From the NCBI GenBank assembly GCA_037379345.1, contig CM074518.1, positions 10,354,001 to 10,418,000 on the forward strand: 64,000 nt of DNA. Reading direction: 5' to 3'. The translations under genes and the position numbers were made by a program. How positions within the stretch are numbered: position 1 is the stretch's first letter; every line of letters begins with the position of its first letter. The stretch comes from Perna viridis (taxonomy: Eukaryota). This document shows, piece after piece, positions 41,873-62,364 of this stretch. The notes under the pieces are model-generated. The model was not told the origin of the DNA and made no database searches. It worked only from the letters and a program-made list of their open reading frames with translations.

Positions 41873-44614
41873 TTATGTATATTGTTGCTTTTGTCTCCTC
41901 CTCAACCTTCTAAGATGATAAGGAACACCATAGTCTGATTCTGGTGTATCAGCCACAAGAACTCGCACATTGTCATTTTGTACTGGAGACAAGCATATTG
42001 ACGTGTATAGATTTTTCAGCAGCATACTATTTCTTCCTTTTCTCCTGTTCTTTATCAAAGTGAACACATCTGTTTTGGGAACTTCAGCCATGGAATTGAA
42101 TAATCTTTTAACCGGGGATCCCAGTGGATGGACAGGTGTAGAAATCAGCTGACTGTCATTGCTATTGGGAACACTGCTGGCATGTGATACATTTCCATCC
42201 ACAGGCTTCTTCCTAGGAATTATATCAGTCTTTGGAGTGTGAATACTTCTATTTATAACTTCAAAGTTATAATCAGAATGATCAATGTCTGTTGAATTGT
42301 TATGTACTTGTTCATTCTTAGTTCCAGTATTTCTACTATCATTTAATGCAGTAACAGATCTTCTCCTTAATCGGCTCCTTCTTTTTGTGGATCTATCAGG
42401 TCTATTTAAGCAAGGAGACTTTGGATCTTGAGAAATGTTTTGAACATCTTCATCAAACGAAAATGAAACGTCCTCTATTATAGTAACTGGTGGTGTTTTT
42501 TCACCAACAAATTTCAGTGCTGTAAATTTTGTATTCCTTTTTGGTGTAACAGTATTGCTCTGAGGTCCATGGTGACAAGTACACTTTGGTCCAGTTGTAC
42601 TCCTACGTTTTCTATGCTTTTTTATCTTTCTTGTTGACCCTTGTACAGACTGGAATTGTGGAGAAACCTAATCATAGAAAAGAGAATGATTTGTGAACAT
42701 TTCTGGCATAAAACAACATTACAACATAAAGAAAAGACAAGTAAATTCAACTGAAGATGCTCTTAAAGTACAAATAAAAACTTTTCTTGGAAAGACAACA
42801 CATTCAAGCAAGGTCATAACAAATGGAACACTAACTTATTCAAATAATAACATTTTATAAATGACTTTGATAAATTTGAAATTGACAGTTGTTTGAAAAA
42901 CTCAGAATCCAGTATTTTTTAATGATACATGTACATTATTTTAATATTTAGCAAATAGTTCATAATAATACAAGTACTTTATGTTTTAAGATATCTAGCA
43001 AATAGTTCATGATGCTGAGGGTCGAGTGGCAATATATGGACTGGTTAGTTGCCCAAAAAAAGTTATATGGACTGGCCTGGTCTTTGCCCCTGGATTACAT
43101 TCTTTTGATTACCGATATAACCTTGGTTCCCTTGATTATTCTCTCATACTTTTTAAAAAGTATAAGTCTGCTCTGGATTATTCATGTGAAAGAAAATTGT
43201 AGAGAAAGTTGCACAACATCCTAAAAGCTTAAAAATATTAAAGTTTAGGAGGTGGATGTGTTGATAATGATTTTTTCTTTAATCATAGCACACTTCAATA
43301 TGTTTATGACTTTTTTCCAAAACACATTTTGTATTGAGTTTTAGTCTATACTTTATCAAATAAAATGCTCTTAAAATATGTCCTATATTTGAGGTACATG
43401 AATATCCTGATGAAGATCCAGCTATAATAAATGCAACTATTTTTGACTGTTCTCATTTTTCTATAATTTGAAAACGTTGTACTATTGTGATCGTGTGTTT
43501 ACCTACATATACATTTTACTTTTTTTTTTTTTAAATCTTCCAGTAAATTTTGGCCCTGTATTGTTTTTTATCACACAATTTATTGCTTTGTGATATCAAG
43601 TTCAAGACTGAATTCAAAATTTTCTACAAACTATTGACAAATTATACGTTATATATATGTTTTAAAGTGATTTTTTGTTGCCATAATCTAATTTTGTCAA
43701 TTTTGTCCACTTCTTCCAAGTTGTCTGCTGTGCTTGCAGCTAAACTTGTTTAGAAATGAATGATTTTGCCCAAATGTCAATAGTGTTTGATAATGTTGGT
43801 CATAAATGTGTCTTCATGTCATTATTTGATATTTTACTTTCTTTTGAAGACGTTCATCATTCTGTTACCATGGATTTACACTACTCTAACACTTTTGGTG
43901 ATCTCGGTATTTAATATTTTAATAAAGGTTATACCATGGTGCATTTGTTGCATTTCACCATATCTGTTCCTTTTTGCAATTTCTATGAATTAAGACGTCA
44001 TGTTTTTACTTTGAAAGTAATTGGTCCATATGACATTATATCGACCGGCAGTTTTATCTAAGAAAATAAACAAATAAAAATCTTAAAAGTCGAATATTTA
44101 ACAAATAGTTCATAATGCGAAGGGTCATATGGCAATATATGGACCGATCTTGTCACCCCCAAAAATTATATAGACCGAAATGTAGCTGAGGTCTATTGAA
44201 TTTGTTGGGGTGACCAACCGGTCCATATATTGCCATTTCACCTGAAGTAGCATGAACTATTTGCTATATCATACTTTTTAATACATAGTTTACTCTAGAT
44301 CATTCGTGTGAAGAAAATAGTAAACATACACAATTTCTTAAATTATGACATCATGATCATAATTTGAAAGCGATATGGTCCATATGGCATTATATCAACC
44401 GGCAGTTTTATCTAAGAAAGAAAACAAATAAAAATCATAAAAGTATATTTACCCATGTCAGGTCATGTATTTCCTCAACTGGAACTGACTGGGCAGTTCT
44501 TGGATGTCTAGCACAATATATTGGAGATGGAACATTGTTTTGTTTGTTTACAGGACTTTCTGTGAAAATCAGTGGAATCTTATTATTGTAAAGAGATTTT
44601 CTTCTTCTTGGCAT
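41873..44614 (-). CDS. RHNO1: RAD9-HUS1-RAD1-interacting nuclear orphan protein 1 (RHINO), 318 aa, two coding exons
   Basis: Exon 44614-44453 encodes MPRRRKSLYNNKIPLIFTESP...IHDLTW. A phase-0 GT-AG intron follows. Exon 42667-41873 encodes VSPQF...NTKFTALKF...VRVLVADTPESDYGVPYHLRRLRRR. These match the RHINO motifs PLLF, SWVSPxF, KFPHLTF and VLVKDTPEDKYG...RRR. A splice acceptor at 44616-44617 implies an upstream 5' exon. Confidence 0.92.
43076..43145. repeat. Fragment of the 20872-20940 repeat, inverted
   Basis: ctggtctttgcccctggattacattcttttgattaccgatataaccttggttcccttgattattctct is close to the reverse complement of 20872-20939. Confidence 0.75.
44099..44266. mobile_element. Fold-back MITE in the RHNO1 intron
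   Basis: Long imperfect inverted repeat CAAATAGTTCAT...TGGCAATATATGGACCG / CGGTCCATATATTGCCA...ATGAACTATTTG. Related fragments at ~42948-43075, 44010-44080, 44370-44437 and ~2780-2890. Confidence 0.65.
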
Positions 44615-45064
44615 TCTACAAAAGAAAAATTTAATAAATAAATGCATTCCATATCTTCATGCATTGAAGATTTGTACAGCAATGCATATCTACTACAGAG
44701 TAAGTAATATCCCTGTAAAATCTTGAAAGAAAAGAAAAAAATGCTTTTTCAGAAGTCAGCAATTTTGATTTTTCGTAAATCAATATACATTGAAAACAAA
44801 ATCTGGTAACTATACATATGTACCTTAGTTCCTGTTCAAATACACCAAATATCTGAAACAAAAAAACGTTACAACATGTCCCTTGTCATATGAAAGTTCC
44901 AAAAAGGACCACAACAAGGAAATTTATTCTTTGTGTATACTTAACTCTATATTAAAGTCGGCATTTGATATGTTAAATTCATTTCTGATACATCCCAATG
45001 TGGACGTACATTGGGTTCTTTGACAAAATACTAGCTGGTGTGAGTATTTGAACAAATGTATTGT

Positions 45065-62300: not shown

Positions 62301-62364
62301 GTTGCCGGTCGATCTATCTGCCCTGAACTGGAGTTCAGTTCATGCTCATTTAGATAATAGTTGA
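53314..62364 (+). CDS. FOXM1: Forkhead box protein M1, 964 aa, seven coding exons
   Basis: Exons 53314-54685, 55948-56099, 57397-57564, 58912-59047, 59354-59467, 59686-59844 and 61571-62364 total 2895 nt in frame. Forkhead domain KRPPFSYMTLIQMAL...AKPGWR|NSIRHNLSL. FoxM-type motifs LDTSLTNIQWL, PILPR, SRRKQKL, many S/T-P CDK sites, and C-terminal NLSKFL...LNWS. Confidence 0.93.
57626..58138 (+). mobile_element. Full-length non-autonomous retroelement (mollusc RUDI/V-SINE-like) in a FOXM1 intron
   Basis: GC-rich 513-bp insert flanked by a 14-bp target-site duplication with one mismatch (tctttttcttatag 57612-57625; tcttattcttatag 58139-58152). It has an (AAAC)n tail, the SINE-core-like motif GCACGTTAAAGAACCC, the 3' motif ATATAGCTGAAATATTGCTG...GACGTTAAAC, and a structured head that is not tRNA-like. 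The family name is from memory. Confidence 0.85.

Follow-up and report, generated by a model that had tools for sequence, protein, structure and literature searches.

A divergent RHNO1–FoxM gene pair in a bivalve genome, with counterparts across lophotrochozoans and deuterostomes

Results

Organization of the locus

The window analysed here is a stretch of 64,000 nucleotides from Perna viridis (assembly GCA_037379345.1, contig CM074518.1, positions 10,354,001 to 10,418,000 of the forward strand), and all coordinates below refer to it unless stated otherwise. It carries an orthologue of RHNO1 on the minus strand (318 residues) and an orthologue of FoxM on the plus strand (about 964 residues), which are transcribed away from each other, their first coding exons being separated by 8.7 kb (Table 1). 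An earlier note on this DNA had described a head-to-head RHNO1–FoxM pair, with no other recognizable gene between the two partners, and this observation is confirmed. Besides the exon models themselves, it agrees with null scans of the gap: none of the seven open reading frames (ORFs) checked in the 44.6-53.3 kb interval and in one FoxM intron matched a Pfam family, and no Rfam family was matched across 41-63 kb. The splice acceptors that the note had placed at 44616-17 and 53281-82 are both correct, as are the limits 41873-62364, which correspond to the final base of the RHNO1 stop codon (minus strand) and to the final base of the FoxM stop codon (plus strand), respectively. The window sequence does not contain a single N.

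Table 1. Exons and regulatory block of the RHNO1–FoxM locus (window coordinates)
Feature	Coordinates	Strand	Details
RHNO1 last coding exon (exon B)	41873..42667	-	264 codons plus stop 41873-41875; acceptor AG 42669-68
RHNO1 first coding exon (exon A)	44453..44615	-	ATG 44614-44612; 54 codons, MPRRRK...DLTW; acceptor AG 44617-16; donor GT 44452-51
RHNO1 predicted non-coding exon 1, minimum extent	50595..50652	-	homology to Mytilus RNA contig
Conserved intergenic promoter block	50594..50852	.	CHR TTCAAA 50812-50817 (TTTGAA on RHNO1 strand) and CCAAT boxes
FoxM predicted non-coding exon 1, approximate	50820..50950	+	possible donor AAAAAAT/GTAATT at 50951-52
FoxM first coding exon	53283..54685	+	acceptor AG 53281-82; ATG 53314; phase-1 donor GT 54686-87
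FoxM SLTNIQWL exon	55948..56099	+	N-terminal of forkhead domain; splice sites and frame
FoxM forkhead exon 1	57397..57564	+	IAAECGKTKRPPFSY...KPGWR; Pfam Forkhead PF00250, 59.7 bits
FoxM forkhead exon 2	58912..59047	+	NSIRHNLSLYSIFERETTKKHGSYWTV...; splice sites; FOXM1 chains sole match
FoxM coding exon 6	59354..59467	+	frame and splice sites; same-phase alternative donor at 59456
FoxM coding exon 7	59686..59844	+	frame and splice sites; tblastn to Pecten, 40% over 84 residues
FoxM last exon	61571..62364	+	KKGKTRKIAPK ... DLSALNWSS; acceptor AG 61569-70; stop 62362-62364

The minus-strand gene

The two coding exons of the minus-strand gene together encode 54 + 264 = 318 residues. A pyrimidine tract and the AG at 44617-44616 lie directly 5′ of the ATG, and exon A ends in TGG/gt. 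Across the resulting junction, DLTW/VSPQF, the predicted protein agrees residue for residue, without any gap, with full-length Mytilus proteins. In a related mytilid, a spliced contig (L048) and an intron-retaining contig (L047) part exactly before AATGCC, which supports the acceptor at 44617-16. The protein is 50% identical to its counterparts from Mytilus edulis, M. coruscus and a mytilid transcriptome, and 30% identical to Saccostrea proteins, which also align across the junction without a gap. Short repeats in its intron 1 (45226-45605) resemble a tandemly repeated element in the Mytilus RHNO1 intron (L001:10999-12352), and the two probably belong to a dispersed repeat family.

Pfam was searched exon by exon rather than with joined, spliced proteins. 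The RHINO family (PF15319), whose curated cut-off is 25 bits, matched both ends of the protein below that threshold: exon A reached 19.1 bits over model positions 1-56, while 22.4 bits were obtained for exon B over positions 176-218. A word search retrieved 12 relatives and a profile round 36, nearly all of which carry PF15319 in precomputed tables; the 36 include one hemichordate protein and one fish protein named RHNO1. With a wider profile (A2), whose 20 sequences represent molluscs, one hemichordate and one fish, a HMMER scan recovered 261 cluster representatives at E <= 0.001. Among the matches that were looked up were RHNO1 of the swordfish Xiphias (E 1.9e-34), of the milkfish Chanos and of sharks, together with proteins recorded as 'uncharacterized' from many bivalves and gastropods, Owenia, Lineus, Priapulus, Patiria, the brittle star Amphiura and sea urchins. 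A bivalve-only profile (A1, mytilid and oyster sequences) also aligned to swordfish RHNO1, with an hhalign probability of 96.8% (E 3e-10). The suspicion that RHNO1 is easily missed in invertebrate annotation is borne out, since all invertebrate records that were looked at name the protein 'uncharacterized' or 'hypothetical'. Patella caerulea (P0041/P0183) and Lytechinus variegatus (P0172/P0173) each possess two near-identical RHNO1-like proteins, which may possibly be duplicates or uncollapsed haplotypes; the contigs that carry them differ in length in Patella and are equally long in Lytechinus.

The docking sites known from human RHNO1 can be traced in the bivalve protein, exon B of which contains VSPQF, a RAD9-type KFTALKF, PVKRLF and a TOPBP1-type motif, VLVADTPESDYG. 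The RAD1-binding motif of human RHNO1 is 56-WVSPDF-61, that is, WVSPxF (PMC10937111); in the window, W/VSPQF spans the exon junction (44455-44453 / 42667 onward), and the 20-sequence alignment shows no variation at V, S, P, Q and F. The RAD9-binding region of the human protein, 88-TSKFPHLTFESP-99, conforms to KFxxLxF, with Phe96 being critical (PMC10937111); its counterpart here is NTKFTALKFVGEKTPP, whose K, L and second F vary little or not at all in the same alignment. Finally, the human pT202 site, PVLVKDpTPEDKYG, binds BRCT1 of TOPBP1 through a hydrophobic triplet at -5 to -3 followed by D-T-P-E, or [VI]LVxDTPE (PMC6175577); the window has RVLVADTPESDYG (VLVADTPE), whose L, D, T, P and E do not vary in that alignment. 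With the RAD1-, RAD9- and TOPBP1-docking motifs all kept, the product is most likely an adaptor between the 9-1-1 clamp and TOPBP1. Given the family matches at both ends of the protein, the profile link to fish RHNO1 and the conserved binding motifs, the assignment of the predicted minus-strand gene as an RHNO1 orthologue holds.

The plus-strand gene

The seven coding exons of the plus-strand gene are in frame, have canonical splice sites and matching phases, and add up to 2892 nt, or 964 codons; the forkhead proteins encoded next to RHNO1 elsewhere are of comparable length (959 residues in Mytilus, 976 in Saccostrea and 1007 in Pecten). In tblastn comparisons, the first coding exon showed 58% identity to Mytilus edulis, where it aligned with the beginning of the forkhead gene, and 32% identity to Pecten, the SLTNIQWL exon matched the Saccostrea and Pecten neighbours, and the last exon was 42% identical to the last FoxM exon of Pecten over 319 residues (E 1e-45). 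The NIQWL exon also matched the swordfish FOXM1 locus (59% over 29 residues, E 0.002).

Among solved structures, forkhead exon 1 scored 67.3 bits with the DNA-binding domain of human FOXM1 as compared with 38.3 bits for the next Fox protein, FOXG1, and forkhead exon 2 matched FOXM1 chains alone. The C-terminal exon gave no meaningful match to solved structures, pieces of FOXM1 included. Its KTRKIAPK and LNWSS stretches are ones that we take to resemble human FOXM1. Two features were noted in the introns of this gene: a duplicated segment resembling a short interspersed nuclear element (SINE) in intron 1 (51140-51600), and a GC-richer element at 57626-58090, inside the intron that separates both forkhead exons, where the one ORF checked (57725-58090) lacked a Pfam match.

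A scan of the same genome for forkhead domains returned 35 matches, corresponding to about 28 genes, with the two FoxM halves at C8:10411421 and C8:10412906. For phylogenetic analysis, a forkhead hidden Markov model (HMM) was built from the single-exon paralogues, every piece was aligned to it, and a maximum-likelihood tree was computed; the forkhead exons of split genes were aligned separately and their columns set side by side, and a repeat tree used exon 1 alone. The tree is based on about 90 columns and has one named vertebrate anchor, swordfish FOXM1, the other classes being represented by 27 unnamed paralogues from the genome of the window. The anchor scored 95.6 bits with human FOXM1, the next Fox protein 40.7. 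The window, Saccostrea, Pecten, Ptychodera, Patiria and Xiphias each contribute their RHNO1-adjacent forkhead to a single clade (approximate likelihood ratio test, aLRT, 94.2; ultrafast bootstrap, UFBoot, 99), which excludes all 27 other Fox paralogues and is recovered with exon 1 alone (aLRT 98.5, UFBoot 97). The FoxM assignment emerges from the phylogeny as well, and the predicted plus-strand gene holds as a FoxM orthologue. A one-residue insertion before AKPGW was considered as a FoxM marker and rejected; it is present in the bivalves and in fish FOXM1, but its absence from Ptychodera and Patiria means that it does not define the clade.

Linkage of RHNO1 and FoxM in other animals

Microsynteny was surveyed with RHNO1 proteins as handles, fetching 10 kb on each side. 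A forkhead gene stands head to head with RHNO1 in Mytilus edulis, Saccostrea echinata, Pecten maximus and the annelid Owenia fusiformis, and likewise in the sea star Patiria miniata, the hemichordate Ptychodera flava and the fish Xiphias gladius, with first coding exons 1.3 to 9.2 kb apart across species. The 878-residue neighbour in Ptychodera has no Pfam entry on record, yet both forkhead exons are present. The Owenia neighbour starts with the exact N-terminal sequence of the published FoxM OFUSG08383 (PMC9539403, supplement), a gene classed as foxM by an independent phylogeny (PMC9539403). Among lophotrochozoans, the pair thus occurs in two phyla (Mollusca, Annelida), and among deuterostomes in three (Echinodermata, Hemichordata, Chordata), so that an origin before the protostome–deuterostome split, as the note had suggested, is the simplest reading, the pair being already present in the most recent ancestor shared by protostomes and deuterostomes.

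Two observations concern individual lineages. In Priapulus caudatus (L007:2191-11435), a clear RHNO1 homologue (PF15319) faces a DUF2045 gene, which illustrates RHNO1 without a FoxM link in an ecdysozoan. For the oyster Crassostrea gigas, loss of foxM has been stated repeatedly (PMC9539403, citing Yang et al. 2014); in Saccostrea echinata, which belongs to the same family, a forkhead gene of the FoxM clade (976 residues) lies beside RHNO1 (L002:1-4525), and a gap in annotation may account for the reported loss.

On its far side, RHNO1 keeps changing company. Mytilus has a B-box gene there and Saccostrea an ARD gene; in Pecten, Owenia and Lineus the place is taken by C2CD5 (L005, L006 and L010, tail to tail), in Ptychodera and Patiria by an ETS-type (ETS/SAM_PNT) gene, and in the swordfish by TULP3, as in human. 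In the window, a PLAT-repeat gene is found further along (3.9-5 kb): two plus-strand ORFs at 3895-4985 match the PLAT/LH2 domain PF01477 (64.8 and 54.4 bits), and what appears to be a multi-PLAT, LOXHD1-like gene lies far to the left of RHNO1. Comparison of the downstream neighbours of the other species with the window by tblastx found none of them. As the far-side neighbours vary while the head-to-head partner stays, the partner has been kept more faithfully than the other neighbour. Human C2CD5 presumably lies on chromosome arm 12p, like FOXM1, and the C2CD5 linkage hints at a larger ancestral block. Elsewhere in the window, long ORFs overlapping in several phases, with repetitive peptide patterns, occur at 2898-3791 and 11279-12181; these are coding-looking minisatellites and probably represent tandem repeats within introns.

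A conserved block between the two genes

When the 9-kb intergenic region was compared with the other loci, the sole match that was neither coding nor repetitive was that of window 50594-50852 to positions 4168-4419 of the Mytilus locus L001 (68% over 261 nt, E 2.8e-13), of which a 49-nt core also matches Pecten. The block contains a candidate CHR (the homology region of cell cycle genes), and CCAAT boxes that read ATTGG on the plus strand (50783-50787 and 50681-50685), with a degenerate box at 50704-50708. In a four-species bivalve alignment read on the RHNO1 strand, the invariant ATTTTTGAATTT, which is the CHR, is followed 24 nt on by a CCAAT box, then by an inverted CCAAT box (the one that is degenerate in the window) and by a third CCAAT box, replaced by CAAAT in Mytilus; after this third box, three of the four species have ATGGCG(A/G)C. 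This order of CHR and CCAAT elements is invariant across three bivalve orders. A strict CHR–CCAAT pattern was found across the fetched loci in Mytilus only, which indicates that the order of the module and its cores are kept but its exact spacing is not. The intergenic region of the swordfish (L009) has TTTGAA and then two CCAAT boxes towards RHNO1, a weak resemblance since in the window such motif pairs are no more frequent than chance predicts. The ratio of observed to expected CpG reaches 1.2-1.5 locally at the block, versus 0.39 for the whole intergenic region; this enrichment marks the block in the window and in Pecten, and not clearly in Mytilus or Saccostrea.

Both genes had been suspected to start with untranslated exons in the cluster of motifs at 50.5-50.9 kb. 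For RHNO1, homology to Mytilus RNA bears this out. The Mytilus contigs L045 and L046 begin at L001 4361 and 4376, inside the block, run to L001 4419 and are then spliced (GT...AG) over 5.5 kb to the first RHNO1 coding exon; nt 1-59 of L045 correspond to L001 4361-4419 at 100%, the next segment starting at L001 9947. These first 59 nt align to window 50652-50594 with 80% identity, which places the RHNO1 non-coding exon there, with GT 50594-93 or GTAAAT 50618-13 as its donor. The start of this exon would be no more than about 160 bp away from the CHR (50812-17). It would include a YY1-like ATGGCGAC at 50644-50637, and an E2F-like TGGCGGGC at 50542-50549 (GGCGGG 50543-48) falls outside the Mytilus-conserved block and inside the predicted RHNO1 intron 1. 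On the FoxM side, similarity to Mytilus extends about 130 nt beyond the CHR and ends in a common TTGAAAAAAATGTA, a possible donor; the FoxM start site would thus lie near the CHR.

Discussion

A probable bidirectional unit and the alternatives to it

We consider it quite probable that the region is the orthologue, in a mytilid-like bivalve, of the human FOXM1/RHNO1 bidirectional gene unit. RHNO1 and FoxM are transcribed apart, and homology to the Mytilus transcript puts the start of the first RHNO1 exon in the block of about 260 bp at 50.59-50.85 kb. If human G2/M genes are a guide, the CCAAT boxes would be occupied by NF-Y and the CHR by MuvB, as DREAM and later as the Myb–MuvB complex with FOXM1 (MMB–FOXM1), and both genes would subsequently be switched on jointly, late in the cell cycle of proliferating cells. 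The RHNO1 product, judging from its motifs, would most likely connect TOPBP1 with the 9-1-1 clamp, as its vertebrate counterpart does. In some lineages descending from the protostome–deuterostome ancestor, the head-to-head linkage would have been lost or loosened. A shared promoter may, we infer, be the force that holds the pair together elsewhere. CHR elements work in either orientation, on or near start sites, with CCAAT boxes upstream (PMC4176359), and DREAM and MMB–FOXM1 act through them (PMC5729532).

Several observations weigh against this explanation. Taken alone, each RHNO1 exon scores just below the Pfam cut-off. Within 10 kb of RHNO1, no forkhead was found in the gastropod Batillaria, the nemertean Lineus or Priapulus, and the Lineus and Batillaria loci contain neither a forkhead nor any other FoxM exon over that distance; besides the window, the survey covered three bivalves, one gastropod, an annelid, a nemertean, a priapulid, a sea star, a hemichordate and a fish. 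In the AT-rich window, the combination of CHR and CCAAT box, counted as TTTGAA followed by CCAAT 20-28 nt later, is found at chance level, with 2 occurrences versus 1.99 expected. Owing to this lack of enrichment, motif content alone was dropped as promoter evidence, and it is conservation that constitutes the evidence. The FoxM start site, along with the 5′ exon of the gene, is placed by inference. Finally, slowly evolving marine genomes keep other neighbours too, C2CD5 being retained by RHNO1 in three phyla, so that adjacency alone is no proof of selective constraint.

The last two points would suit a situation in which RHNO1 and FoxM, though truly orthologous and long adjacent, each depend on a promoter of their own under independent regulation, their adjacency surviving through slow genome rearrangement. 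General conservation of local gene order is what the persistence of C2CD5 in Pecten, Owenia and Lineus would then reflect, and the variable distance between the first coding exons of the pair would fit as well. In addition, a CHR near head-to-head genes usually drives only one of the two (Muller et al. 2014, PMC4176359). We nevertheless regard separate promoters as unlikely. A single conserved non-coding block lies between the genes, and RHNO1 exon 1 comes within about 160 bp of its CHR; the far-side neighbours differ between phyla while the head-to-head partner is constant; and in human, FOXM1 and C12orf32 (RHNO1) are both listed among the late cell-cycle genes with conserved CHR elements (PMC4176359) and have a common, tested bidirectional promoter (PMC8104967).

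The bidirectional unit would also lose its meaning if the forkhead gene were some other clade II Fox gene, of the J2/3, N, O, P or K type, and its likeness to the human pair coincidental. FoxM is a long branch, the tree has about 90 columns and one named vertebrate anchor among own-genome paralogues, and the last exon matches no solved structure. We consider this very improbable, however, as FOXM1 leads every other solved Fox domain by 29 bits, the clade of RHNO1-adjacent forkheads has 94-99% support, the NIQWL exon has a match in the fish FOXM1 locus, and the Owenia neighbour is the very gene that an independent published phylogeny put in foxM (PMC9539403). As for an independent origin of the pair in lophotrochozoans and deuterostomes, or a misassembly of the genome of the window, the missing linkage within 10 kb in a gastropod, a nemertean and a priapulid could be cited in its favour, but we find it barely credible, for five phyla, represented by eight independent assemblies, show these two orthologues in identical orientation, the window is free of gaps, and FoxM has been reported lost in Panarthropoda (PMC9269926), which makes loss in some lineages a simpler account than repeated gain.

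Having considered these alternatives, we return to the bidirectional unit and its age. On balance, we lean towards the view that RHNO1 and FoxM have formed one CHR/NF-Y-driven bidirectional unit since before the protostome–deuterostome split (>550 million years), kept by selection for joint G2/M expression of a transcription factor of mitosis and an adaptor for checkpoint and mitotic repair, with RHNO1 as an ancestral bilaterian component of 9-1-1/TOPBP1 signalling that outlives the broken pair, as in priapulids. If so, a protein that the literature calls a vertebrate one would have to be seen as an ancestral part of this signalling in bilaterians. The presence of the pair in an annelid, an echinoderm and a hemichordate as well as in molluscs would point to an ancient, probably selected coupling of G2/M transcription with 9-1-1/TOPBP1 signalling. 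Embryos of Owenia, sea stars or bivalves offer invertebrate systems in which this coupling may be studied, and a name, RHNO1, is now available for a set of 'uncharacterized' invertebrate proteins.

Comparison with known systems

The human FOXM1/RHNO1 unit has a tested bidirectional promoter (F/R-BDP; Barger et al. 2021, PMC8104967) and has been studied as a co-amplified, co-regulated unit in cancer, its conservation being reported for vertebrates only (PMC8104967). The locus described here resembles it in having the same two orthologues in divergent orientation, with a small promoter region between the first exons and with a non-coding exon at the start of both genes, that of FoxM being a prediction in the window. 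The order of elements also agrees in the fish locus (L009) and in the four bivalves, running from the FoxM side through TTTGAA (on the RHNO1 strand) and the CCAAT boxes to the RHNO1 side. It differs from the human unit in the 8.7 kb between first coding exons, with long 5′ introns (6.0 and 2.3 kb), and in its promoter, which is a short CpG-enriched patch in a genome of 32% GC instead of a classical CpG island. Whereas the human promoter has been tested, promoter activity and co-expression in the window are predictions from sequence.

With respect to late cell-cycle genes of the CHR type (PMC4176359; Engeland 2018, PMC5729532), the block shares a canonical TTTGAA, CCAAT boxes on one side and conservation across species; its LIN54/MuvB and NF-Y sites are predicted from these motifs. 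Contrary to typical CHR genes, the distance from the CHR to the start site on the RHNO1 side (about 160 bp or less) is longer than usual, and the CHR is therefore more likely to be a FoxM-proximal element.

The predicted RHNO1 protein retains the N-terminal MPRRRK...PLIF.ESP block, WVSPxF, KFxxLxF and [VI]LVxDTPE of its vertebrate counterparts (PMC10937111, PMC6175577). It differs from them in its greater length (318 residues), in a middle part that cannot be aligned and in an extra conserved block, PVKRLF, which is present in most invertebrate members. RHINO was still described as 'found in vertebrates' in a 2024 paper; Day et al. noted that the TOPBP1 motif is conserved 'in metazoa' (PMC6175577), and in the literature searched no paper tied RHNO1 to invertebrates in the sense of this gene pair. 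What is new is thus not another kind of system: the genes of Perna viridis and of the other invertebrates are phylogenetically deep members of a known gene unit.

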